Source: Eutreptiella sp. 'Long Island Sound 2002' (lineage: Eukaryota > Protista > Euglenida). Taken from it: a stretch of DNA of 64,000 bases. The stretch lies in assembly GCA_964036045.1 (NCBI GenBank), contig OZ038378.1, positions 9,114,001-9,178,000 on the forward strand. Reading direction: 5' to 3'. This document shows, piece after piece, positions 483-33,300 of the stretch. The first letter of the stretch is position 1; every line of letters begins with the position of its first letter. The notes under the pieces are model-generated. The model saw only the letters and a list, made by a program, of their open reading frames with translations. It was not told the DNA's origin and did no database searches. Position numbers and translations under genes: made by a program.

Positions 483-3400
483 ATGACAGAGTCGCGGGCA
501 GAAAGTTTGGATGCCGAGTACAAGCTGCTGCATGACCAGTACATTGATTTGGAGGCGAAGTATCAACGCCTGCAAGACGAGCATGAGAAGCTCACCGCCG
601 AATATACCGAGGTCATGAATCGCAACGAGAAGCGCAAAGGGACCATTACCAGCCTCATGAATGTATGTGTTGTGCAGCGGTGGCGGGTTCTTTATGAATG
701 TATGTGGTGTTCGCCAGGAGTGTGATGTCAGCCTGAAAAACATGGATTTGTTGGTTTGTACGTGAGCCTGTTCAGTACCTGCCCCAAACAGTCCATTTTT
801 TTGGGGCTGATGGGTGCATTAGCGGGATACATGGGCTTCATATGCACAGCTCTGGCCGAGCTCAAGGTGCGAATGTGTGAATCTTGAGTTGTGCAGTAGT
901 GTGCAGGGGCTGCGTATGGCCACGAATGGTAGAATGCGTAGGCTCACCTGTGCCTTGATTGCAGAACCAGGAGTGGTACCAGATGCGGATTCAGGAACTT
1001 GAGAACGAGGTTGCCGAGCAGAGCACACGCTATGACAATCTCTACGCCAGTGCCACAGACAAGCTGGCCACTGCTACGAAGGAGCTTGATTCGCGGGACC
1101 AGCTGCTCAAGGCTGCGACGGTATGCGTCCGAGACCTCCCTCGTTATCTCTCAACCTTGGGGATGCCCAGCCCTGCCGAACCAGCAATACACGTATGGGG
1201 GTTGCAAAACGGGTATGGCTTCCACGGTTTGGGAGGCTGGGGAGCTGTCCCAATCAAGGCTGGTTGTGGACCTCATAGTACACTTGGCGTCCAGTGCCAT
1301 GTCTTTTGTTTGACCTGCTTGTTGGTTGAGAGTGTGTTTGGAGAGGGGGTGTGCGGAGGGGAAGGGCGTGCAGTTTTGTGGGTGAGAGTGGGGTGCTCGT
1401 TCCACTGCTGGTGATTGCAGCCTGCTGTCCCCACGGTGTCCACTGGCTTACCAGCGTGGGCAGAGGCTTCATATTCAGTCATTTCCAGACCGTGATCTTT
1501 GGAGGGTGCTCTCACAGCAGCAGACTTTTAACAGGGCAGGGCCAGGCCTGTGCTTAATTTTTTTTTTCCACAGGGAGGAACCTCCACCAGCCCAATTTTT
1601 CTCAAATGGTTGGGGAGCAATTTTCTTGACATTTCTCAGCCTCCAGCCCCTCCAGCCCTTCCCCCCATCTCCCCAACATTTTCAAGTCCTTTTGCCTTGT
1701 GTTGCCTGGGAAGACGCCCTGGGCATAGAGCCTTTCATCAGGGCGTGGGTGCATCTTCTGGTCAAAGGGGGCCAGCCCCCCCCCCCCCCCCGGGACCCCC
1801 CCCTCCTCTGTAAGGGAGGTCAGAAGTAGGTGTCTGTGCACAGTAGAATTTCTTGTTGTTTGATGGGTAGTGGCCTAGTGTTGTGCAAGTCCATGTTGCA
1901 GGACGGGCTTTGGGGTTTCCTCATTTGTATTTCCCTGTTCAGATGTCTCCAGGCACCCATGGAAAAGTCTTTGAACCTCAAATCTGATGTCAGTTTGTCC
2001 CCCCTGTGGATACACAGGAACTTGTAGCAGCCATGTTTTTTTTTCCCGGTAGAAGGACCACTATACCAGGAAGAAAAGGGCAACTGTTTACAATGTGGCA
2101 CAAAAAGCTGCTGCTTGTCTTTTGACTCTTTTCTCTCCTGAACGGGATAAATTTTGCTGATTGCAGGACCTGAGAAATGTATTCGTTGGATAAGTTATTG
2201 GTTGTGGCACGTGATGCTGCACTTTTTTATGAGTACAACTACCAACCTGTAGTTGAGGAGTACAGAAACAAAAGGAGGCTCACAAATCTGCAATCAGAGC
2301 GTGCAGCCAAGGGGAAACGGCGAAAGGGTGCGCTAGGAGGAGGGTCTCCATTCTCTGACCCCCCCCCCCCTCCACTTCTTCCTTCCTGGCCCAAAAACCC
2401 CTTCTCCCCCCCTCCGGCCCCTGTTAAGCACAGCCCTGGTCAGGGCTTTCAAGAAGCGATGAGCAGCAGTGTTCAGAACAACAGCAATGGCAGAAACCCT
2501 TTTCATCCTGGCTTTTTTTTTCTGCATCTCTGGTGAGTCGCCAGAGTCAAACTTGGAGCATGGTGTTTCTCATGTCACACAACACCTACAAACCTGTGTT
2601 GCGGAGGTGCATCAGAAAAGAAAATCACTGCGGACGTGCAATACCAAGTAGCTGCTGCATTTTTCAAGGTACCAGCAGACAGCTGCTGAGCAGGCTGTAA
2701 GACGAAGTGCAGTGACTGTGGGTTGTAGTGGCCGCGGTGTGTTGTTGCTTTCACTGTTTGGGCACGTCCATGTGATGTGCCAAACCATACTCAGATGTTC
2801 ACTGACATTTTTCCACAGATTTGAGTTACCTTGGCATGCTGCAAGTGGCACAGTGAACAGGGATGCATCTGCAGCCTCAGACACACCCCTAGTCCCCACG
2901 AAATTTTGGGTGGCGGATTGAAGGGGTGAAAATTAGGGGGTGATTCCACCCCTTTTTTTAGTCCCCAAAGTTAGTGCAGCCCCGCTCTTTTATGCGTGAA
3001 CACTCCCCGACCCCCTTTTCAGGCACTTCGGTTACAGTGCTGCAAATGTGAGCTGAAGGCATCTGCTACTGGTCTAACACCGGGGTCCCGAGGGATAGGG
3101 ACGCTCCCAGGTTTAACGCGGACACTCGCTGGTAGCCCTAAGTTTCCATTCGTGGTTAGAAGGGGGAAGGGGGCAGGGCACCCAGGTTTGAATGCACTGT
3201 GTTTGGTTTTTGGAGCTGTTTGTCTGCCATCACTGAAAATTGGTTCTTGACCCCATTTTTCAGCATATAGCTACCCTAGCAGCTACAGTGGCAAGACACT
3301 AACCCCAACCCGAAGGCGGGAATCCAAGCCCACAATGGGTCTGTAGTGAAACCTAGTAAAAATATTTTTTTGAAAATTTTTTTTTACTAAGTAGCAATTT

Positions 3401-6400
3401 ACTAGGTTCACTAGTTTTTACTAGGTATTGGGAACCTAGTAAAAAAAACTTTTTTTTTACTAGTTTAGAACCTAGTAAAAAAATTTTTTTTTCTAGGTTT
3501 CGGAACCTAGTAAAAAAAAGTTTTTGTTTTTGCTAGGTTTCGGAACCTAGTAAAAAAAAGCTTTTGTTTTTACTAGGTTTCGGAACTTAGTGAAAAAAAA
3601 AGTTTTTTTTACTAGGTTACTAGGTAGCCACCTTACCCACTTGTGGGCCACCTCTGATTCTGCCCCCCGCTCTGAAGCGGTGGGGACCCCCCCAGGCGGC
3701 AGGGGTTATGTAGCCACCTTGCCCATTTGTGGGCCACTTCTGATTCTGCCCCCCGCTGTGAAGCGGTGGGGACCCCCCAGGCGGCAGGGGTTATGTAGCC
3801 ACCTTGCCCACTTGTGGGCCACCTGTGAGCTATGTCACAGATTGTGCTCAGATTGTGGTGTATCACTGGTGGGCTGCCCAAACCGCTCTCAGTGCGGATT
3901 GGGACACAATGGGCTTGGCGTGGGTTGTCTGCGACTCTTTGTGGAATGCCTCATGTGCCAGTGCACAACACCGCAAACAGCTGGTTAAATCGTGGGCAGA
4001 GCGCACTTTGCAAGCGTCGTCCATAGATATGTCTTTCGCCCCACCCGTGATTGTGGCCCAGGTATATAATTTGAGCAATTCCCATTGGGTGCTCCGCTTG
4101 TTGTTGATTGCCCCAACTGGCGAATACCTGTGCCTTAAGTTTGACCCAATGTGTGACCGGCCACACATTGTTGGGGCAAACCAAGAGGAGTTGGCTGTTG
4201 TGGATTTGATTGCCGAGCGAGAAGGCGTTGAACCACAGTAGCGGAAGAGGTGGTCAAATATTTTGGATGCTTTCGGTGCCCTTGCATTTGCAATTGCACC
4301 CCTGCATTCCACCTTCATCTAGCAGCTTGATGGTGTCAGTTGCCATCCGGCATGTCTCTTGATGTTGCATTGTGCCTTGTCTCGGCGCGGTGTCAAGGGC
4401 ATATTGCAAGTGCCACAAGATCGATTGTGGTTGTTTCGTGAAATGGCTGAGGCTACTCTGTACTTCAGTCGTTCGAAGTTGGCCTCCACCCCAAGGACCC
4501 CAGCGGTACATTGGGAGGTGGCTCGGATGTACCCCCAGCCCAAATCTGTGGACCCCGTTGACACATGCTTTTCTTGTGATGGCACACCTCACATGGCGTG
4601 CCACGAATGTAAGGTTCTTCATTGTGCCTTGCATGCGTCCATCTTGTGTCAATCGGACATTTGTGTTGGGTTGCGCCAATTCTGGACGGCCAACCTTGCT
4701 GCTATTGCTGTTGCTTCTGCTGTTGCTTCTGCTGTTGTTGCTGCTGCTGCTGTTGACACCCATCCTGGTGTGCCTACTGTTGTTGCTGATTCTGCTGTTA
4801 ACACCCGTCGTGGTGTGTGGATCTGTCGCAAGTGGTATGCAGTGCCTCCTCAATATCCCCAAAATGCCGATGGTCAACTGAGAAATGACCAAGCATTTTG
4901 CACCGAGCTGCAAGGGGAGTTAAAAACGGCTCTGTTTGGGATGTGCACCAATAATCCCACAGTGCGAGGCAAACCGCGCCATGCAGATACCAAGGCCGAC
5001 TTGATTTTCAAGCGTGTCTTTTGTAACTACTTGTAAGTAGTTCGTACAGATTTTGTTTCTATTGCCCAACCCCAATTATATTTTGTTATGTTGGCCGAGT
5101 GCCAACTAATTGGTGTGCATGATGGTTTGGCCTGGGTGGGGCGCCACTAACACAAGTGGCCGAGAATCGACTCGGGGGCGTTATGCCCTTAAACGAAAGT
5201 ACCACCTACCATCGAAGTGTTGACTACCTTGTTTAAAACGGCAGCGGGGGGGGGGGGGGGGGCTTAGTGGACTGAGGTAAAACTTAGTAAAAAAAATTTT
5301 TAAAAAATTTTTTCAACATTTTTCTTTAAATTTTTGCTTCCTTTACCTAGTAAAAAAACCTTTTTCAAAAAAAATTAAAAAAAATTCTTTTTTACTACAT
5401 TTTACTACATTTTACTAGGTTTTACTACATTTTACTAGGTTTTACTACGGCGCATACTAGGTTTCACCAAATGCCCGCCCACAATGCCCTAGCATCACCC
5501 CAGCCCCAATTTGTACCCTATTGCTACCCCATGTTTGTACAAGGTTCTCAATCTACTGGTGGAGTGAGTGTTACCAAAGTCGACAGCATGTTGGATAAAA
5601 CAGGTGTACGCAAAATGTAAGAATGTACCAGAATTGGGTATGAAGCAAGATTTCAGGGCTGTGAGGGTCTCCCCCTTTTGCAATTGGCTTTATGTGGACT
5701 GCTGGAAAATAGCCCTCACACAACACCCCTCACATAGTACTCCTCACGCAAGGCCACCACAGGCCCGCACGCAACCTGCATGTCCGCCGTACCCCCCAAA
5801 CAGTGCCTCTAGCGGAACTGCACTGTGCATCAACACACCTCCACCCAGCTGGCTTGCTCTGCCACCTTGCCTTGCTCTTGCAGAAGGAGGCTCAAGCGGT
5901 GCAGCAAGAGCTGGATGCCAATGCCACGCAGTTGAAGAATGCCAAGGTATTGCACCACAAGCCCCAGGGGTGTGGCGCCATTCCCCTGGAATGCGTCATG
6001 CGTTTTGTCAGCCTCGAATTGGGTGGTTGATGGGTGAAGTCATGCATGGATTCGCTGGGACCGAAACGCCTGTTTCGTTTGCTGAATATATTGCTTTTCC
6101 CGCCGTCGCCGAGCATCACCGCAGGCACACCACACTGGTGCCTTCACTGGCAATCGTGTTGGCACAAGGTAAAGGCCTTCAGTTGTGGAGAAGCTGGTGC
6201 ACCACATGTGCAAGTTTCTAAGCCTTTTTTTTTTATGGTTCTGTGGCACTCGTCAGGTTCTGAAGGGCGGGAAGTAACGGCGTCCATTGCCAGTATTGCA
6301 TTGGCACCGCCAAACTGCAAACTGCACCCACCGACACAACACACATGACCATGTAAGGCTGATGACAGATGGAATGTTGCGGGATGAGAGCCCTTCGGAG

Positions 6401-9400
6401 CCTCGAAATTGGGGTGGGGGCTTGGAAAAAGGGCTTCACGGGCCACAAGCCTGTGTGTGAGTGCCATTGAAGGGCTTTGCAGGCCAGTTTGGCGTTTTGT
6501 AGTCAGAGGGCATCAGAAAGGGCTAGCCGACATTTCCCAGCTTGGCAAGCAAATTGTAACACTGGGTACAGGTTGGAGGAAACGACGCCATAGCTGCAGG
6601 AAGCTGGGCAAGGGCGAAAACTATTGGGCTTTGGAAGCATCTGGAAGGCAATTGACCCTTCAAGGCCCCGTTACCCAATTAGAAAGGGGCACCAAGGGCC
6701 TCCTTCTCCAACAATTTGATTTTGATTGTTGCAGAAGCCGCATAGGCAAGTAGCCAACGTGGAAAAGTGTTGGATGGGAGCATTTGCAATACGTCCAGCA
6801 GCATGATAACTACGACTGACAGACAAATTCACAGGGTCCAGGAACAAGGACGCAATCCTCTGCAAATGTGGTACACTGCATTCCGAACCACATTCAGCCC
6901 ATGAAATCAAAGCCCATTGAAAGTCCTGGAATTCAGTTCTCAAGCAGAGACACCAACCTCAAAGTTGTGTTTCTGGCAGAGGTTACAGAATGCCAAGCTG
7001 GCATTACCAGAGCCCAACTGGCTCAGCCCCGGACCACACTCCTGACTCTGATGGAGGGGAGTGTAGGAAGGGCAGTGGCAAGGGCGTCTCCTCGGGAAGG
7101 GATGGCAGCAGCGAGGGCTGGTGCCCCTGCTTGTATGCTCCTGCCCCACAACACCCTCTAGCCAGGCCCTACAACAAAGGGGCATTCTCTGCCAAGATGT
7201 TTGTGCTCCGGATACACATACATGCTCCTGTAGGCTGGGATGCGATACACAAATATTCGGTTGGTTGAATGCACAATGGGTCCTTTTGCAGTAAAGTCCC
7301 GCACAACACATGCATGAAAAACCAATCAAAACAATCGAAAATTGGTTGTTTCGTTAAATGAGATTCCAGATCAGAGGTGCACTTGCATCATGGAGCGTGC
7401 AAGGCCCTCACAAGGCATTTCAGTTTTCTTTTCCTGTCCGTTACTGTGGGATACAGTGCCCTAAGCCAGTTTTCTTGTTAAATACCCAGAACAAGGTGTT
7501 CGAAGAGCCGTGTCAAATTGTTCCTGTCCTAGTGCCATAACAAGAAATTAAAAGCTGGCTACTCGAAGAAATTCACCAAAATTTCTTTTGTAGAATAAGG
7601 CAATAAGGCTGGCGATCCTACTCTGTTCTTAATGCTTGTGCAGGGCACTCCCATGTAGGGAAGAAGGGGCCCATGACTGACGTCACATACTCTCATCCCA
7701 TTGCAAGGGTAGCAGATCACAGAAAGCAGCGAAGAGGTTGCATAGCAAGGCATCGTCGAGCATTGTAGAGCATGGATAGACCGGGAAGGTCTTCAGATTA
7801 GTGGTGAGCGCAGTGTCCATTTTTTTTTGGAAAAAGGCCAACTGTTGTGCAGAGCTTCAGCTGGCTGCACAGGCTCAAAAAAACACATAGAACACCCACA
7901 CCCACACCCATCCCCACACCCGCGCCCACACCCGCACCCATATCCACAATGACACCCACACCACACCCACGCGGCACCCTTTCAGTGGTCCTGTTTCAGT
8001 GGCCCCCGTTCAGCCCCAGTTCAGTGGCCCTGTACCCGCCCTTCCCCCCTCCACGCTGCCCATATCCATACCCACCCACCCACGCACACCCACCCACCCA
8101 CCCACACACACACACACAAAGCCAACACTACACCCACACTCACACCCATGCGCACACACACGCCATGCTCTACCACTGCTCTAGGATCATTTGGTGTCTA
8201 CCGAGCGGAAGTTGGAGACCACAACACAGCAGTTGTCAGATGCAAAGGTGCTCCGCCCTGACCCTGCCCTGTTGGAGGGAGGACTTCCAAATGTGTCCAC
8301 TTCAATTTTTGCCCGATCTACATTTTTCCTGTTCCCTTCGGGGGACCTGATATTCAGTACATGCGCCAACCCCTCCTGGAGAACGAACCAGTCGGCGCAT
8401 CTGGACTGCACGTGGGCTGCACCCAAAGGGCTCATCCCTGTCGCCCCCCCCCCCCCCCCTCCAAGGGCCTGTTCCCCTTGGCGGCGTCCCCCTTGACTTA
8501 GCCGGCCCATTACACACTGATTGAAGTACATACTGTATGTTTCCTTAAATTTTAAGGATGCTAAGATGCGTGCAAGGGGCAGGGGAGTGTGGGACCTCCA
8601 AGTAGTCCTGCAAATACCCCTCGCCCCCGGTGTAGGCACTGGTCAGCCCCCCCCCACGACGAAACGCTCCTGCACCTGGTTTTCATTCACTCAGACAGAC
8701 ATGGATTATTTTGTTATACCAAGGGGGCGGGGTTTGGCACTCCTCCTTTGGAATGGAGGACATTTTTGGTCGTAGGTCTGTGGGGGTCTCTGGACGGATG
8801 CTATTGCTTTGGCCTTTGATGCATGGTACTGTTGAGCTACTTGCCGCAAACTCCCTTGCAGATTTTCAGCATCAAACAGATTTTGCCCTCCCAGAAACCC
8901 CCTCCAACCCCCCATCCCCCTGCACGGACCTGGAAGAACCATACATCATCATAGAACCACAGCTGGCCAGAGATGAGAGTCGCCCGCAGTATACTGCAGG
9001 CCAACTCTCCTGGCAGTGTATCACTTCCCACACCACTGAACCTACCTGACTGAAACCCAGCCATGTCCAGAGCCATGATCCTGGGGTGGTCATTGAGTAG
9101 AGGGGGAGGCGGGCAGTCGTCATTGGACACGAGGGCAGTGGTACCAGTAATTGAAGAAGGGCACAGTGGCGATTGATGGGCTGGGGCACATCTGCAATGG
9201 TGCGAGTGCTAGCAGGGGAAGTAGGCAGGCCTTTTTGAATAGAGTAAGGGGAGGTAGTGGTTACGTATCGTCGCTTTAGTGTGTATGGCAATCCAATAGG
9301 GCTGAGGCATTTGTACCCCTGACAGTGACTCTTACAAAGGACATTTCAAAGGGGGTGTATGATGCCCACGTCCCTCTCAAGACCCCCCCCCCCTGGCGCC

Positions 9401-10466
9401 TCAAAGGGTCTGTAACAATCGCCGGACTCGTCAGTGGCCCATTTACCCATGCACACGCTTTCTGTTGAAAGACGGAGTGCAGGCCTAAGGGTACCAGCCC
9501 GCACCCCCGCATCCTGTCGCAGCAACGGCTTGAGTCGCTGGAGTTGCAGATTCAGGCCTATCACACAAGTCTCGAGCAAAAGAATATGAGTTATCAGGCG
9601 GCAGTGCAGCAGCTGAATCAGGTGGAAAAGCAGCTGGAGGACACCAAGGTGTGGTGTGTGTTGAAGGGGCACGTGTAGCGTGGGTTGTGCCCACTGTGGT
9701 AGGAAAGGGGCTCAGGGCATATGGCATGAGGAGGGCGGAGGGGGGCAGTGATGCTTGTTCCCAGCGGATGAGGATAATCCAGGTATCGTCGATGGGCTTG
9801 AGAACCCTTCATCCCCTTGCACAAGGATCAAAAGACCTCGGTCTTGTGACTGAATGTGCAGGAATGGTCATAACGTTGTTCCTTGTGCGGGCTACGGATG
9901 ATGTGGAACCCTGTGTTGATTGCTGCCAAGTTCACACACACTGCCAGAGTGCCACACAGCTGCATAGTGCCGAGCTGCATCAGGGCTGTTGGCCTGTAAG
10001 TGGCCACACAAAAACGATTACGTCCTAATTTCATTGTGCAGTGCCAGACCAAAACCCGAGAGGCTACGCTGAAGGCTGAGGTGGCTCTTCTTAAGGTGAC
10101 CTCCCTACCATTGTGTGCAGTTTGGCAGGCAGGCGCTTCCTGAGTCTCAGGCCCACGGGGCAGGGGATTGCTTAGTGGCTGGGGCGGTACTGCGCTAGCA
10201 CGTGACTCCACCGCCTCTGGTGCAGCCGGATAGCCGCCACCACTGCAGCACTACCAGCGTCTGCACGGCGTGCTGTGGTGGTGCGCGCGATGTCCATGAG
10301 AACAGAACGCCTACACCACCAAACCAGAAAACCGCAAAAAGTGTCCATGAATCGATCTCAGCAACATCTGCATGTGATTTACCTTTACCCCATTACTGTG
10401 TCAATTCAACTGCCCACCCACCAGTATCCCCAGCAACCCAACAACAAAATCATCCCCGTTGGAAGC

Positions 10467-27597: not shown

Positions 27598-29664
27598 TAA
27601 GTCTCTATTTTCCAACCCCTTCCAACACCATTTGAAATGGCTGGTGCACGGCTGAGGCCAATGGAGGGTCCAACTGTTGTGTGTCTGTTACCTGATGGGA
27701 AACTGGGGTTGTCTCGTGGTGCAAAATTCTAAAAGGTATATGTGGTATGTGCATAGTGCATGCACTATGCCGGTACCTCCCCTTGACCCATTGCTCCGAC
27801 ATCTTATTTTGTTGAGTTAAAAGCAAACTTGTCTATTGGATGCAATTTCACGTGTCAAGTCCAAATATTCTTGTCCCATATCTGAACTCCTCAACATGCA
27901 AAGATTCTTAAATGCTTTGTCTCCTAGGTCAATTTTGTTTTGATTTTGTGTAACATCACCCATCATCAGCAACGCCCACCATGTCCAAGGGGTTGTGGTA
28001 CACCTCGCGAGCATCATCAATTATGCGTTTGGTTCTGCAGTGCGTATAGAACTCATGGGGATGACCAGTAGCCAGCCTCCTCGAACCAAGTATTGCATGT
28101 AGAGGGTAAGCACTAGCGTAACCAGCATATTTTTAGGCCTAAACGCCCTCAAACGGTGATGTCCCAAGTGCTATCCAAGACTATCCCACCTTGGGGACCC
28201 TAGCCTGGCAGCATCCCAATGTGGTAGGTATGTTATTCTTCCCCACGTGGTAACCACACCGCGGCAGGGGTTGTGTAGGTCTTTCGGTGCTCTCTGCGTT
28301 GGGGACCTCAATATAGCAAGGGTTGTGGAGCCTCTTTGCGTACATCTGGTGTGGCATTGTGAATGAGTTCCAATCATTCACCCATCCATTAGTCAGTACG
28401 CATTGATGGATCTGAAGAACAACATGATATTATTAAGGCAGGGACATTGACCAACTTAGCATGTGGGTTGTCTAGTGCTTTACATATTTGTCCCATCAAC
28501 ATTTTGGTTTCTCCCGAGCACACTCAATGACACTATGAGAGTGTGTGGACCCTAAAAACAAGTTGATGAGTGCCATCGGCCAATGCACATTCTATTGTGA
28601 TGTGCACAATTTTGCATTGGGAGGCAGGCCCGTGCCCTGCCGCCCCTCTTCATGACGCTATCATCGTTGAATGAGCTGTCGCATGAAGAGTCATGAAGCT
28701 AGAACGGGAACATGCATCAATTTTGGTAAGAAAAACGGGAGTCGTTCCTCAGATCTCAAAATGAAGTTGACACACCCAAACCTTATAACACAGGTGCAGG
28801 TGCAAATATGCCACTAGCGTCCGGTAACAATTTGTCACATACTACGAACGGCTGAATAGGACCAAGCTCTGCTTGAGCATGTGTGACGTGCCGGACACTC
28901 ACGTGTAGTGATGCATTTGATTGTGGACAAATCAAAAACGCAATTGCCAACCCACCACTCCTCATAAACAAGCAGATTGCGCATGCTGTTCACCGTGGAG
29001 TTCCATAATCTGGCTCATGGTCTGATGTGTGGTATACCCCTTACGACTTCCAACTTGGGTGTCACCTGGGGCTTTATTGATGGGGCGTTGTATTGCATCT
29101 AGTATGAGCCGGGCGAGGACCATGTACACGCAATTGGACACATTGATGTGCCTGTGATTCATGGCAGAAGTCATGGAGCCCGTCTTGCACAACAAGGACA
29201 ATCTAGTTGGACACCGGGGCGGGGGGGTGAGGGACAACTTGTGCACCCCCTTGAGGACCAAAGTAATGTCAACAACATACACAAAAAAAGTAGCCTCATG
29301 ACATTCTTTGGTGAGTGTGGCATGGAATGTCTCAAAAACTAATACAAACAGTGCTTTTTTTGGGGGGGGGACCTAATTGATTAGGTACCGAATTTGGCAC
29401 CTCGCTCGAATCTCATGCTGAATGATTCATGCTATCAATTCAATGAATTCAGCTCAATGATGACTGGGTGCAAGGGTTGGTGCTTTCACCAGGGACCTTG
29501 GTCGGATGCGAGGATCCGCCTAGGGCAGTTAGCCCTCAAGCACTCGCCCTCACCCAGCCCTCTCGACTGCTCTTCCTCTCCAGTGTCGTCCCCGGCCTTC
29601 CGCTGGATGGACGTCCGGGGGAATCGATGTTTCAGGCTAAAGGTTTGGGGAAATCTGGCGCTAT

Positions 29665-29725
29665 TGTGATGTATATAATTTGTAAAGCAGGCTGTGATGT
29701 ATATAATTTGTAAAGCAGGCTGTGA
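29665..29725. repeat. 28-bp perfect tandem duplication near the 5' boundary of the LINE
   Basis: TGTGATGTATATAATTTGTAAAGCAGGC x2. Confidence 0.9.
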
Positions 29726-30127
29726 GGGAAGGGTGTCCCTCAACTACAAGATTTCTATTGCCCACCATGACCAATTCGTTGCTTGCACCTGGCCGGGAGT
29801 TGCTATACAAGTGGTACCACATTGGTGATTGTCCGTCCCAAAGGTGCCAAAAGTTGTTTCAGTGTTACGAAAGGGAAGAGCAAGATAGGATGGAATTGCA
29901 CCGGTTAGGTGAACTCAAAGGGCTACTTGCAAGGGCAGACATCGGTGAGGAATCACACAAACAACACCGTAAACAGGTTGACAGACTTATGCTCAACCTA
30001 AAGAAAGCCAAACAGGTGGCCAGGATAAGAAATAAATACGGTTCCTTTGTTACCGATCCAGTAGGGGTAGCCAAAGCCTTGAGTGACCACTGGAGTGGCA
30101 TCTCCAAGGAGGGGGGTGGCACCTCAA

Positions 30128-30399
30128 CCCTAAGCCTATACCTTTTTCTAAGGGGGGGGAATGATTTTTGAGTCATTTTGACCCCCCGGAGGGTTTTTTC
30201 CATCCAAGGGATAATATTTGCGTCCCATGCACATTTGTACACATGGTTGCTTTTAGGTTGAAGAGGGCACACTTCGTGCCGAAACGCGTACTGCTGGGCA
30301 CTCAGTAGTCATTCTTTTTGTTTCCAACGCTTTGGTTTGAGACCGTGTGGTTTTGCCTTTGCCGTTGAGGGTATTCATTGGACTTCTTGCATCTTTACA
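30128..30399 (+). mobile_element. 272-bp insertion in the LINE, no TSD; probable Penelope-like pseudo-LTR or retrozyme-like unit
   Basis: Removing it rejoins ACC TCA A|TT GAG CAG TGT (..GGGTS-IEQCAEYMQSLP..) in frame. It starts with (A)CCCTAA and contains a hammerhead core. Confidence 0.65.
30250..30296 (+). ncRNA. Minimal type-I hammerhead ribozyme-like motif (Penelope type)
   Basis: TTGAAGA (30258-30264, U at the usual C3), helix II GG(G)CAC-ACTTC-GTGCC, GAAA (30281-30284), palindromic ACGCGT (30284-30289), then A as H17. Helix I pairing is weak. Confidence 0.55.
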
Positions 30400-33300
30400 T
30401 TGAGCAGTGTGCGGAGTACATGCAATCCCTCCCAATCCCAACATCGCTGAACAGACTGGCCCCAGCACTTTTCAAATCATTGCCTTTGACTTGGTGCAAG
30501 AGGCTCTCCAGAGGCAAGTCCCAGGAGCCTCTCCAGGCATCGATGGATTTGCCTTGAACATATACCAAGAATTTCATGAATTCTTTTTTGTCCGTATGCT
30601 GGAAATCCTGCGACAAGCACAGGAAGATGGACGTTTCCCAGAAGCCTGGAACAAAGGCCTGATCAGGTGCATCCCAAAAATAGCAGGGGCATCCACTGTC
30701 GAGAAATTGCGCCCTATTGCACTCCAGCAATTGAAAAAGAAGTGGTTCGTGACGGCCCTTCTCATTCAGGTTGAAGACATCCTGCGCCAGATCACCCCCC
30801 CCCCCCAACAAGTGGGGTGCATTAAACACCGACAAATGCAACACCACATTTGGGGGGTCAGAGGAGAATGGGACACGGCGGAGTCCATGATGTTCCTCAC
30901 CATTGACTACCGCAACGCCTTCCCCACGCTCTCACATAACTTCATCACAGCGGCCCTCACCTTTTTCTCCTTCCCACCCACATTTGTGAACCTTGTCATC
31001 TCCTCACTACGATCACAATACGACTTCCTGGTGGGCAGTGAGCCATCAGGGAGGTGATTTTCTACCAGGAAGCAGGCATTGGTCAGGGCGCCCCCTTTCC
31101 CCCCCAACTCTTCTCTTTTTGCGCAGCAATTATCATTTACCCACTACGCCACCTGCGTGTTAAGATGGGCATGTATCTTTATGTAGATGACTTCCTCATC
31201 ACGTTTGGTTGGGAGACCACCAAGCAGCAACTAAAACAGTGTTCCACGAGCTTCAGCATTTTTCGGCAGTTAGCGGCCTACAACAAAACATAGGCAAGTC
31301 AACGTATGTCACGAAGGGTACCCTACAACCGGAGGCACTGCATTTTATGCAAGATTCGGGCCTACAGCATGAAACAAAGGTCCGGTACCTTGGGGTACAG
31401 ATGGGGCACGTGTCAGTGAAAGAAGCCTTTGTAGGTCCCCTGCGAGAAGCTTACCGCAGAGCGCGCATACGGCTACCATTGCACTGTCCATACCGTAGAA
31501 AATCACACTTCTAAAGATGTGGATTCTCCCAACGCTATTGCTGACTGCTAGGGCTTATGTTGCCGATCGGTCTGTAGTCTCAGCCCTCAACACTGTATAC
31601 AACATCCTCTTCTGTTTTGACAATTGGGGAATCACAACCCACCAGCTTTCCCAGCACAGGGACCAAGGAGGGTACTCGGTACCCTTGCCACAAATATGGC
31701 TCGCTGCCCAAGGAGGAACAGCTGCAGTGGCAGTGCTGACCTCCCCCGCAATTATGCCAATGTACGTAATGCAGGCATTTGTTAAATTCTGCACACGCTA
31801 CGGAATTCCCACCAGCCACAAGGTACTTGCGGTGACGGAGTTGGGGCCAGTCCCCATGAAAGGAGCAGGCTACCTCGCACACAGTTACAATGCATACTCC
31901 CTTGCGCGCAAAGGCATCAAAGTCAAGCTCTCGCTTCCATTAAAGGATCTACCACTGTGGCACTCCACAGTCTTTTGTAACAAGCATCACAATACATACT
32001 TTGCCCCCCACCTCATCAGGCAGGGAGTACTGACGGTGGCGCAACTATTTGACAGTAATCTAGTCATGCACTCACACATGCACCAATACATCTCACGCTC
32101 ATGGCTACCCATCTACCAGCAGGCACTACACCAATGTGAGGCACTCCCTATAAACGACTGGTCCCCGCCAGCCGTATGATGGTATGGAGATGGAAGCAAA
32201 TTGACCCAAGAGGTAGGAGGGCGAACGACACAATACGTGGGGCCACCACCTGTGGTCCCCTACAAGTCATCACGCCAGTCATTGGAGCCCAAACTTCCTA
32301 TTGTGGAGAACTCTAGAGTTTTGCGGTCAATATTGCAGTGGCTAGGGAGGACTAGGAGTTGACTTACGACACCGTTGTGGACCATGCTTTGCAGCCTCCC
32401 CACAGGGGGTGTTCCGATGGAGGCTTACCATCTGTATATGATGCCCCACATGGTCTACCAACTTAGAAGGGAGTTCACAATGCCTCCTAGGGATGAGCTA
32501 GAAACCTAGCGTAGTCAATCAGTTAGCGCATGGTACCGTAAGATCAAACTGAGAGTGTGTTTCCCGGACCCCATTCCACAAGTGTTACGGCAGCTCATCC
32601 TTTATCTACCGGGTAAACAAACACACTAAGGTCAAGAAATCTGTCACAGTAGCACACCCTAGTGACAAGGAGTGCCACAGGATCCTACACAGTAAAGATT
32701 CATACTATACAAAGCTCAAAGCGCTCAAATATCTTGATTCCACCCAAGACTCCAAAGGGCACCAGAAAGTGATGGAGAAGCTGTCTGCCCCCATAATCAC
32801 CCCATAATGATAATCAGGTACGCCATGATGTCCTCAAGGCAAGGCACTTTGACGGTATGTGGTATAGGAGGGTGGGTAAGTGGCTCCAGTGCATGGAATG
32901 AATGCACTAGGACTGGTTGCATGAGGTTGACTTATCATATCACATGCTGGGTTTAAGACACGCACATCCTGAAAGTGTACAGCGGCGCGAGGTGGAAAAT
33001 TATATGGACACCTCCTCTCTGCCTAAGGCTAACTGTTGATGTGCCACTAGGAAAGTAACGGGATGCGTCAGATCATCACCGGACTCATAGGTGAACATGC
33101 CCTAGGCAAAAAGGACGTACCACAGGTGAGATGATGGGGCCCACACAGGGGCGTGGCGATCAGAAGTCGCACTGCAGGTATACTCAAGGTAGGAATGTAA
33201 GTGATTCCTACAGCCCATGTCCTTGACAAGGGAAGAAGCTATGGTATATTATTCTGAGAGTGTACTTAGATTCCGAGACTGTTGCAGAACTGTTGAAGCT

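Follow-up and report, generated by a model that had tools for sequence, protein, structure and literature searches.

The window analysed here, a stretch of 64,000 nt from the euglenid Eutreptiella sp. 'Long Island Sound 2002', carries within a LINE-like open reading frame an insertion that is very probably a dead-on-arrival, 5′-truncated retrocopy, comprising the terminal ~275 nt of RNA transcribed from an autonomous euglenid Penelope-like element (PLE). The fragment is functionless at this locus and is in itself an ordinary dead piece of DNA; its value is that of a pointer to the parent from which it was copied.

Comparison with paralogs confirmed that 30128–30399 is an insertion within an ORF encoding a reverse transcriptase (RT). 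In an alignment with the 45-nt flanks on either side of the insert placed end to end, 12 paralogous copies of the host element, 80–91% identical, were uninterrupted at the site, and the paralog ORF crosses it without a break (..SDHWSGISKEGGGTP-EQCAEYMQSLPIP..). The earlier note had proposed that removal of 30128–30399 restores the LINE ORF; the insertion is supported by the continuous paralogs, but the limits have to be moved, as excision of these 272 nt leaves three nucleotides that the paralogs do not have (GGGTS-I-EQC in the window vs GGGTP-EQC). Since the parent also has the base that precedes CCCTAA and the TT that follows ..TTTACA, the most likely limits are 30127–30401, giving an insert of 275 nt that is wholly colinear with the parent element. 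Coordinates given as "q" are positions along the 272-nt query (window 30128–30399). The site comprises the following features:

29722..30126, + strand: upstream part of the interrupted ORF of the LINE-like host retroelement (..SDHWSGISKEGGGTS), from paralog comparison
30124..30127, + strand: TCA(A) microhomology at the 5′ junction, common to the target (..ACCTCA) and the parent (..AAGTCAA, then CCCTAA)
30127..30401, + strand: inserted fragment, matching unit positions ~3421–3693 plus a 2-nt TT tail, with up to 97–98% identity to other copies and absent from the host paralogs
30394..30401, + strand: 3′ end of the element (..TTTACA) and short TT tail; other copies end in ACA, ACATT, ACATTG or ACATTGTG(TT), with which the following unit begins where copies stand in tandem
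30402..31057, + strand: downstream part of the interrupted host ORF (EQCAEYMQSLPIP.., followed by the RT domain), from an RVT_1 match (E 3.9e-5) and paralog comparison

No target-site duplication accompanies the window insert, in agreement with the first description: the longest word shared by its flanks is 4 nt, which is the random level (mean 4.4). Duplications were likewise absent from nine of ten other truncated copies of the family, the sole candidate (17 bp, at L023) lying within a local tandem repeat and hence being ambiguous. The target was neither duplicated nor deleted, and target and parent overlap by TCA at the 5′ junction and by G at the 3′ one. Of note, the host copy carries a separate 1-nt frameshift near 30480–30490 (..FKSLPLTW.. 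vs ..FKPLSLELVQEAL.. in the paralogs) and must be regarded as defective independently of the insertion.

The genome search proposed at the outset showed the fragment to be multi-copy, with at least 54 matching places in the 2.28-Gb assembly, 20 of which cover all 272 nt at 85–98% identity. In 20 other copies, conservation reaches 50 nt further upstream than CCCTAA. Elsewhere the 5′ ends are scattered, falling at q45, 54, 87–100 (eight copies), 108, 113 and 129, with some copies running upstream beyond q1, and every copy has one fixed 3′ end, ..CATCTTTACA, followed by 0–9 nt of TTGTGTT.. and then by unrelated DNA. Scattered 5′ ends combined with a single 3′ end are the signature of 5′ truncation; of the conserved ends expected earlier, the 3′ end is thus common to all copies, whereas the 5′ end is not conserved.

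On C8, two homologs of the 272 nt are spaced 3,693 bp apart and thereby define a tandem unit of 3,693 bp, in which a 28-nt leader region is followed by ORF1, ORF2 (742 aa, in the -1 frame) and a 3′ UTR of 430 nt that terminates in the 272-nt query; the window insert corresponds to the final 273 nt of the unit plus a tail of 2 nt. A solitary full copy on C3, 99% identical, is preceded by a partial unit (3303–3693), and a copy on C13 is preceded only by unit positions 3521–3693, arrangements that both constitute a pseudo-LTR (pLTR). Head-to-head inverted copies were found on C2 and C14. From about q90 to q272 the insert corresponds to the pLTR, in which a spliced-leader (SL) acceptor, a minimal type-I hammerhead starting 1 nt further on, its predicted cleavage site, a leader-complementary stretch and the 3′ end succeed one another. 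Because copy starts cluster at q87–100, the upstream pLTR of C13 begins at q100 and the edge of a sub-repeat lies at q102, the 5′ end of the parent transcript may be placed near q87–100. The sub-repeat in question (208 bp, unit 3303–3523) lacks the hammerhead and is tandemly repeated at least eight times just upstream of full copies (L101:6487–8001 on C3; L033:~7966–9419, C5:102599170–102601933); its 3′ edge coincides with the 5′-end cluster of the short copies.

As to coding capacity, ORF1 has coiled-coil and Ser/Arg-rich basic parts, and ORFs 1 and 2 occupy the whole unit except for the 3′ UTR. At L031:5797–6200, the ORF2 frame is open for ~400 nt over the end of ORF1, in the -1 frame; ORF1 and ORF2 are likely to be fused by frameshifting, and no slippery site was identified at this overlap. 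ORF2 contains RT motifs and matches RVT_1 weakly. Homologs of it in the databases have ~700 aa and carry PF26215 (HTH_animal) and PF28514, with one cluster including a marine-protist transcript, and the Atlas clusters nearest to ORF2 are rotifer-rich HTH_animal proteins; a phmmer search of ORF2 against PDB gave no match and NCBIfam nothing meaningful. The genome contains at least 95 relatives of the ORF2 RT, in families of 37–57% identity and many with intact frames. A linked RT, for which a check had been suggested, is present within the same unit, and its probable place in the PLE clade is indicated by architecture and by the Pfam and Atlas hints. No GIY-YIG domain was detected at E≤1 in ORF1 or ORF2 of one full unit or in homologs P0002, P0004, P0010 and P0011, and as the two ORFs fill the unit we file the parent provisionally as an endonuclease-less PLE.

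The assignment to PLEs rests on structural hallmarks described for these elements (PMC8557442, PMC11167929), namely units arranged in tandem or with a pLTR, truncated copies in inverse orientation, a 3′-proximal hammerhead and a tail of variable length. Tandem or partial-tandem pLTRs (C8, C13, C3) and inverted copies (C2, C14) are all represented in the window family, the hammerhead motif lies inside the pLTR, and the four features listed in PMC4209133 are matched. Internal initiation of reverse transcription, leaving a 'tail', is a further hallmark of PLEs (PMC11167929); here the tail beyond the unit end extends 0–9 nt into the next unit and is shorter than the 30–40 bp reported for PLE tails (PMC8557442).

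The hammerhead was first described as TTGAAGA–helix II–GAAA–CGCG–TA and lies precisely there, the window holding a single copy. It consists of the following parts:

30258..30290, + strand: minimal type-I hammerhead, recognised by family covariation, an invariant G10.1-C11.1, a bulged nucleotide and a palindromic helix III (definition of PMC4209133)
30258-30264, + strand: core U3UGAAG8A, fitting the YUGANRA core of PLE hammerheads
30265, + strand: bulged G
30266-30270/30276-30280, + strand: helix II, 5 bp, with loop 30271-30275
30281-30284, + strand: GAAA (G12A13A14 = 30281-30283)
30284-30289, + strand: palindrome ACGCGT, A15.1-CGCG-U16.1
30290, + strand: A17, with the predicted cut between 30290 and 30291
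30291..30308, + strand: alternative local hairpin directly behind the cut site, with a CTGCTG / CAGTAG stem, from fold predictions, which would compete with leader pairing

Helix I in cis amounts to 2 bp only. An exact-pattern search for the hammerhead of the window family returned 58 matches in the genome and none in the control. Position 3 is U in all 58 copies, and position 8 is G in 48 and A in 10, mostly more diverged copies; the closest sister families are U3-A8. It had been suspected that U in place of C3 might make this copy inactive. The substitution is real, but a copy-specific defect is not indicated, since U3 is shared by the entire family and sister families have C3-G8 or U3-A8; judged from these comparisons, U3.G8 characterises the young family as a whole, as a wobble intermediate linking C3-G8 and U3-A8, and is no lesion of the window copy. 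U3.G8 is a putative active core.

Conservation across families supports the assignment further. The hammerhead is kept in at least eight sister families with RT identities of 37–57%, and 21 of the 25 sister-family 3′ UTRs obtained carry one such motif at the homologous place. Sister-family motifs were aligned with those of four other hammerhead-bearing element types, 19 sequences altogether, and the proposed pairing holds in 98.1% of cells vs 76.6% in shuffles (0/500 as high) and 28–44% with a slid partner; the pairing signal is partly selected, as motifs were collected by a pattern requiring a Y3..R8 core and at least 4 bp of helix II, with one match per locus, at the homologous place. Seven of nine pairs are altered on both sides. 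For helix II alone this applies to four of five, with 97.8% of cells paired, and its variants are GGCAC/GUGCC, GGGAC/GUCCC, GCCUC/GAGGC, GACCC/GGGUC, GCCCC/GGGGC, GACUGC/GCAGUC and GGGC/GCCC; the palindrome occurs as CGCG, CAUG, CCGG and UCGA. The 3-8 core pair is C-G in 8, U-A in 8 and U.G in 2 sequences, with no other state, and U4 G5 A6, A9, G12 A13 A14, A15.1-U16.1 and H17 are invariant or nearly so in the 19 sequences. A consensus lacking the core or helix II covariation would have spoken against the original proposal; instead, the core is near-invariant, with G or A at position 8, and helix II covaries.

Rfam hammerhead models reported no match in 29000–31500 at E≤10, in the window at the gathering score or in a genome search with RF00163. 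Minimal PLE hammerheads do without the helices I and III that these models expect, and the silence of Rfam therefore points to a limit of the models and is weak evidence against a hammerhead. Cofolding of two copies predicts an intermolecular ACGCGU helix (-47.7 vs 2 x -18.4 kcal/mol). The hammerhead is genuine and, as the earlier note had recognised from its palindromic helix III, of the Penelope minimal type, matching the features in PMC4209133; its catalytic competence is suggested by the sequence pattern.

Immediately upstream of the ribozyme core lies an acceptor for the euglenid spliced leader, a sequence that has 3,309 exact matches in the genome and is contained in the published Eutreptiella leader (PMC3621762), and just downstream of the cut site lies a stretch that is complementary to this leader:

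30250..30256, + strand: SL acceptor, pyrimidine tract and AG (CTTTTAG), with the exon running from G30257, 1 nt before hammerhead position 3, as defined by the junction in copy L058
30295..30305, + strand: leader-complementary stretch, TGGGCACTCAG here and TGGACACTCAG in most copies

An AG, mostly as CAG, precedes position 3 by 0–1 nt in seven of eight sister families, CAG being the consensus of the 3′ splice site of E. gracilis outrons (PMC11170887). The only sampled family without the acceptor (L070, L072; C2:192924776, C11:47801227) has TTTTGG, not AG, before a canonical CUGAGGA core. In L058, the single leader-joined copy of the window family in a search allowing up to 3 mismatches, a 28-nt leader with two mismatches is joined, directly after the AG position, to GTTGAAGAG and then to the remaining pLTR. 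Genome-wide, the leader 3′ end followed by 0–2 nt and YUGANRAGG occurs at 48 places vs 0 in the control, and 14 of these have PLE-group cores (1 from the window family, 13 from sister families), with flanks that differ for each copy. Leader–hammerhead junctions in differing flanks indicate that element RNAs were trans-spliced at the ribozyme core and reverse-transcribed to the very 5′ end.

Other element types, whose cores are canonical CUGAUGA, account for the remaining 34 junctions, among them L096–L100 (C1:441717, C3:185778485, C1:124282924, C4:9071057, C7:76460087), and the element type of L096 and L097 has a leader-complementary stretch after the cut site as well. At L086:~440–620 (C6:10535443–10535521), two leader-headed hammerhead copies are arranged head to head, 56 nt separating the leaders, and form an inverted pair at the extreme 5′ ends.

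The family version of the complementary stretch, UGGACACUCAG, begins four nt past the cut site and would pair with CUGAGUGUCUA of the leader; an A-to-G change in the window copy converts one pair to G.U. The energy of the predicted leader duplex is -18.6 kcal/mol vs -6.8 for shuffles, with 0/300 as low. Families A, F2, F3, F5, F7 and X1 show significant leader complementarity; in F4, F6, F8 and X2–X4 it is absent or insignificant, and it is thus not universal. Leader-joined RNAs were folded solely as natural genomic retrocopies; the MFE fold of L058 forms the leader helix, and natural leader-joined copies show the outer helix. This led us to a tentative model, to which we attach limited confidence, in which trans-splicing supplies the 5′ strand of helix I by pairing with the stretch behind the cut, so that the ribozyme would be competent, or regulated, only on trans-spliced RNA. 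If true, the ribozyme would be assembled by trans-splicing and would couple removal of cap and leader to the choice between translation and retrotransposition. A literature search found no description of a leader–hammerhead link in any retroelement and none of a ribozyme assembled by trans-splicing.

For the parent element we propose that trans-splicing of the leader at the acceptor, the occurrence of which is evidenced by the retrocopies, would yield a capped mRNA that starts with leader and hammerhead. The hammerhead probably cuts multimeric or read-through transcripts, acting as a dimer via the ACGCGU palindrome, and leader pairing may aid cleavage by lengthening helix I. Several observations favour uncut RNA as the usual template for reverse transcription: the leader is kept in retrocopies, insertions run ~110 nt past the cut site, and the young U3.G8 family thrives. 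The same observations leave room for the possibility, which we regard as real though less than even, that the motif does not self-cleave in this lineage and serves as a structured 5′-UTR, RT-recognition or trans-splicing signal, with the leader-complementary stretch recruiting the leader RNP. Retrocopies that keep leader and hammerhead show that uncut RNAs were copied, insertions that end ~110 nt past the cut site imply that the 3′ hammerhead was uncut in their templates, and the family with U3.G8 thrives; moreover, metazoan PLE mini-hammerheads cut poorly in vitro (PMC4209133). Against such a role stand the catalytic-core positions, which are invariant or nearly so across families of 37–57% RT identity, and the covariation of the 3-8 pair together with retention of G10.1-C11.1 and the palindrome, as expected for catalysis over a mere hairpin.

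The insertion event itself can be reconstructed as follows. RT of the parent, having no endonuclease of its own, would have been primed on a nick or break in an old LINE-like copy, reverse transcription would have started in the ACA/TTGTG tail and stopped prematurely after ~275 nt, and the cDNA was probably joined by the 3-nt microhomology. Instead of the full-length RNA, the template might have been a short non-coding pLTR transcript, for example from the 208-bp array plus pLTR, mobilised in trans; the insert lines up just as well with the 3′ UTR of the full-length RNA, and DNA cannot separate the two sources. Full copies on C3, C5 and C8 do have a segment spanning q-118..q272 upstream of them, and pLTR-only copies from the q87–100 cluster, along with the leader-headed short copy, indicate that short RNAs of this region are reverse-transcribed. 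The window copy, however, starts neither in that cluster nor at the acceptor, and we consider a short template unlikely.

Truncation of a full-length RNA from the autonomous PLE also accounts better for the insert than the first interpretation did, in which it was a small (~272 bp) non-autonomous, self-cleaving and retrozyme-like element, with a telomere repeat at its start and with telomere-like or broken DNA as its priming site. We now hold this to be very improbable: multiple copies, missing target duplications, a hammerhead, a parent without endonuclease like Athena-type elements, short copies of ~181 bp (q87–100 to 272) and one leader-headed copy of ~170 nt would all suit it, but the 5′ ends are scattered, the tandem arrays seen exclude the hammerhead, and the sequence above CCCTAA, conserved in 20 copies, runs on into the 3.7-kb coding unit. 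Both this upstream conservation and the two-ORF unit argue that the insert is no independent element. The check for tandem copies returned no hammerhead-bearing monomer array, only the 208-bp arrays of C3 and C5.

The telomeric part of that interpretation fares no better and concerns one feature:

30128..30133, + strand: single CCCTAA hexamer, internal to the parent 3′ UTR, CCCTAAACC in most copies, with upstream sequence conserved in 20 copies and occurring at chance frequency

On the same strand, CCCTAA is found 10 times in the window vs 15.6 expected, and once in the 3.7-kb unit vs 0.9 expected; that of the insert is 124 nt upstream of the hammerhead core, and two adjacent repeats, (CCCTAA)2, were seen in 1 of about 100 fetched loci. 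The hexamer is therefore not a terminal telomere repeat, being single and internal. The telomere repeat of this genome is TTAGGG, with (CCCTAA)5 abundant and plant-type (CCCTAAA)5 absent; an 11-nt match of CAACCCTAAACC to the plant-type repeat was dismissed as irrelevant for that reason. Priming on telomere-like DNA likewise finds no footing, as the flanks of 30 element copies contain no telomere arrays and the copies occupy internal positions on at least 20 chromosomes. The reverse-complement telomere repeats next to the hammerhead and the location at chromosome ends that mark Athena and Coprina were not found in the element copies. Genome-wide, (CCCTAA)5 has ~54,500 matches, many of them interstitial and in apparent strand blocks, e.g. 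C1:507221–590061.

Minimal hammerheads in the pLTRs of PLEs were described, in metazoan variants, by Cervera & de la Pena 2014 (PMC4209133), and the euglenid motifs resemble them in many respects: type-I order, an extra nucleotide between A9 and G10.1, an invariant G10.1-C11.1, a helix II of 4–7 bp and a very short helix I, an A15.1-U16.1 pair closing a palindromic 4-nt loop, which makes a dimeric ribozyme probable, a U3-A8 core variant as in Cercyon, and occurrence mostly as single motifs from truncated elements besides tandem and inverted arrangements. They differ in having a euglenid rather than a metazoan host, in the SL acceptor adjoining the core and the leader-complementary stretch past the cut site, and in the U3.G8 wobble of the young window family.

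Athena and Coprina are endonuclease-deficient PLEs (Gladyshev & Arkhipova 2007, as summarised in PMC8557442), and as far as that summary describes them the window family is similar in the missing GIY-YIG, in the hammerhead near the 3′ end and in its rotifer-rich protein clusters, and shares with Athena a coiled-coil ORF1 separated by a frameshift. Unlike in the Athena and Coprina of that summary, stretches of reverse-complement telomere repeats by the hammerhead are missing from the window family, and its copies are dispersed internally without telomere-repeat flanks, its clade being suggested by architecture.

Non-LTR retrozymes of animals form tandem monomer arrays that give rise to circular RNAs (PMC5680766; bioRxiv 10.64898/2026.07.22.740005). 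Like these short hammerhead sequences, which are related to PLE pLTRs, the euglenid genome has short pLTR-only and leader-headed retrocopies; the window insert differs in being single, non-tandem and 5′-truncated and in reaching above the pLTR into the parent 3′ UTR.

Insertions at DNA breaks that are independent of endonuclease and 5′-truncated are established for LINE-1. The window insert is like them in its lack of a target-site duplication, its junctional microhomology and its 5′ truncation, and unlike them in the class of its RT and in that priming at a break is, for the window insert, what we infer.

Our literature search found no work linking Penelope-like elements with euglenids (Euglena), so that the earlier suggestion of an element undescribed in this lineage is plausible. 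What appears to be new is, plausibly, a PLE without detectable endonuclease in a euglenid, judged by one full unit and database homologs. New as well, as far as genomic comparison can tell, would be an endonuclease-lacking PLE family that is dispersed internally without target duplications, and a mini-hammerhead flanked by a leader acceptor on one side and by a leader-complementary stretch on the other. With at least eight sampled euglenid PLE families, many intact ORFs and no detectable endonuclease, the system bears on the source of primers for endonuclease-less PLEs, and it offers a natural series of the hammerhead core pair, C3-G8, U3.G8 and U3-A8. The fixed juxtaposition of acceptor, core and leader complement, frozen in retrocopies, could make the role of PLE hammerheads, long an open question, testable in a culturable organism.

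A bias towards microsatellites is known for the Naiad and Chlamys PLEs. At L031:3840–4530 (C8), an imperfect (CA)n array of ~700 bp precedes the tandem PLE copies by ~280 bp.
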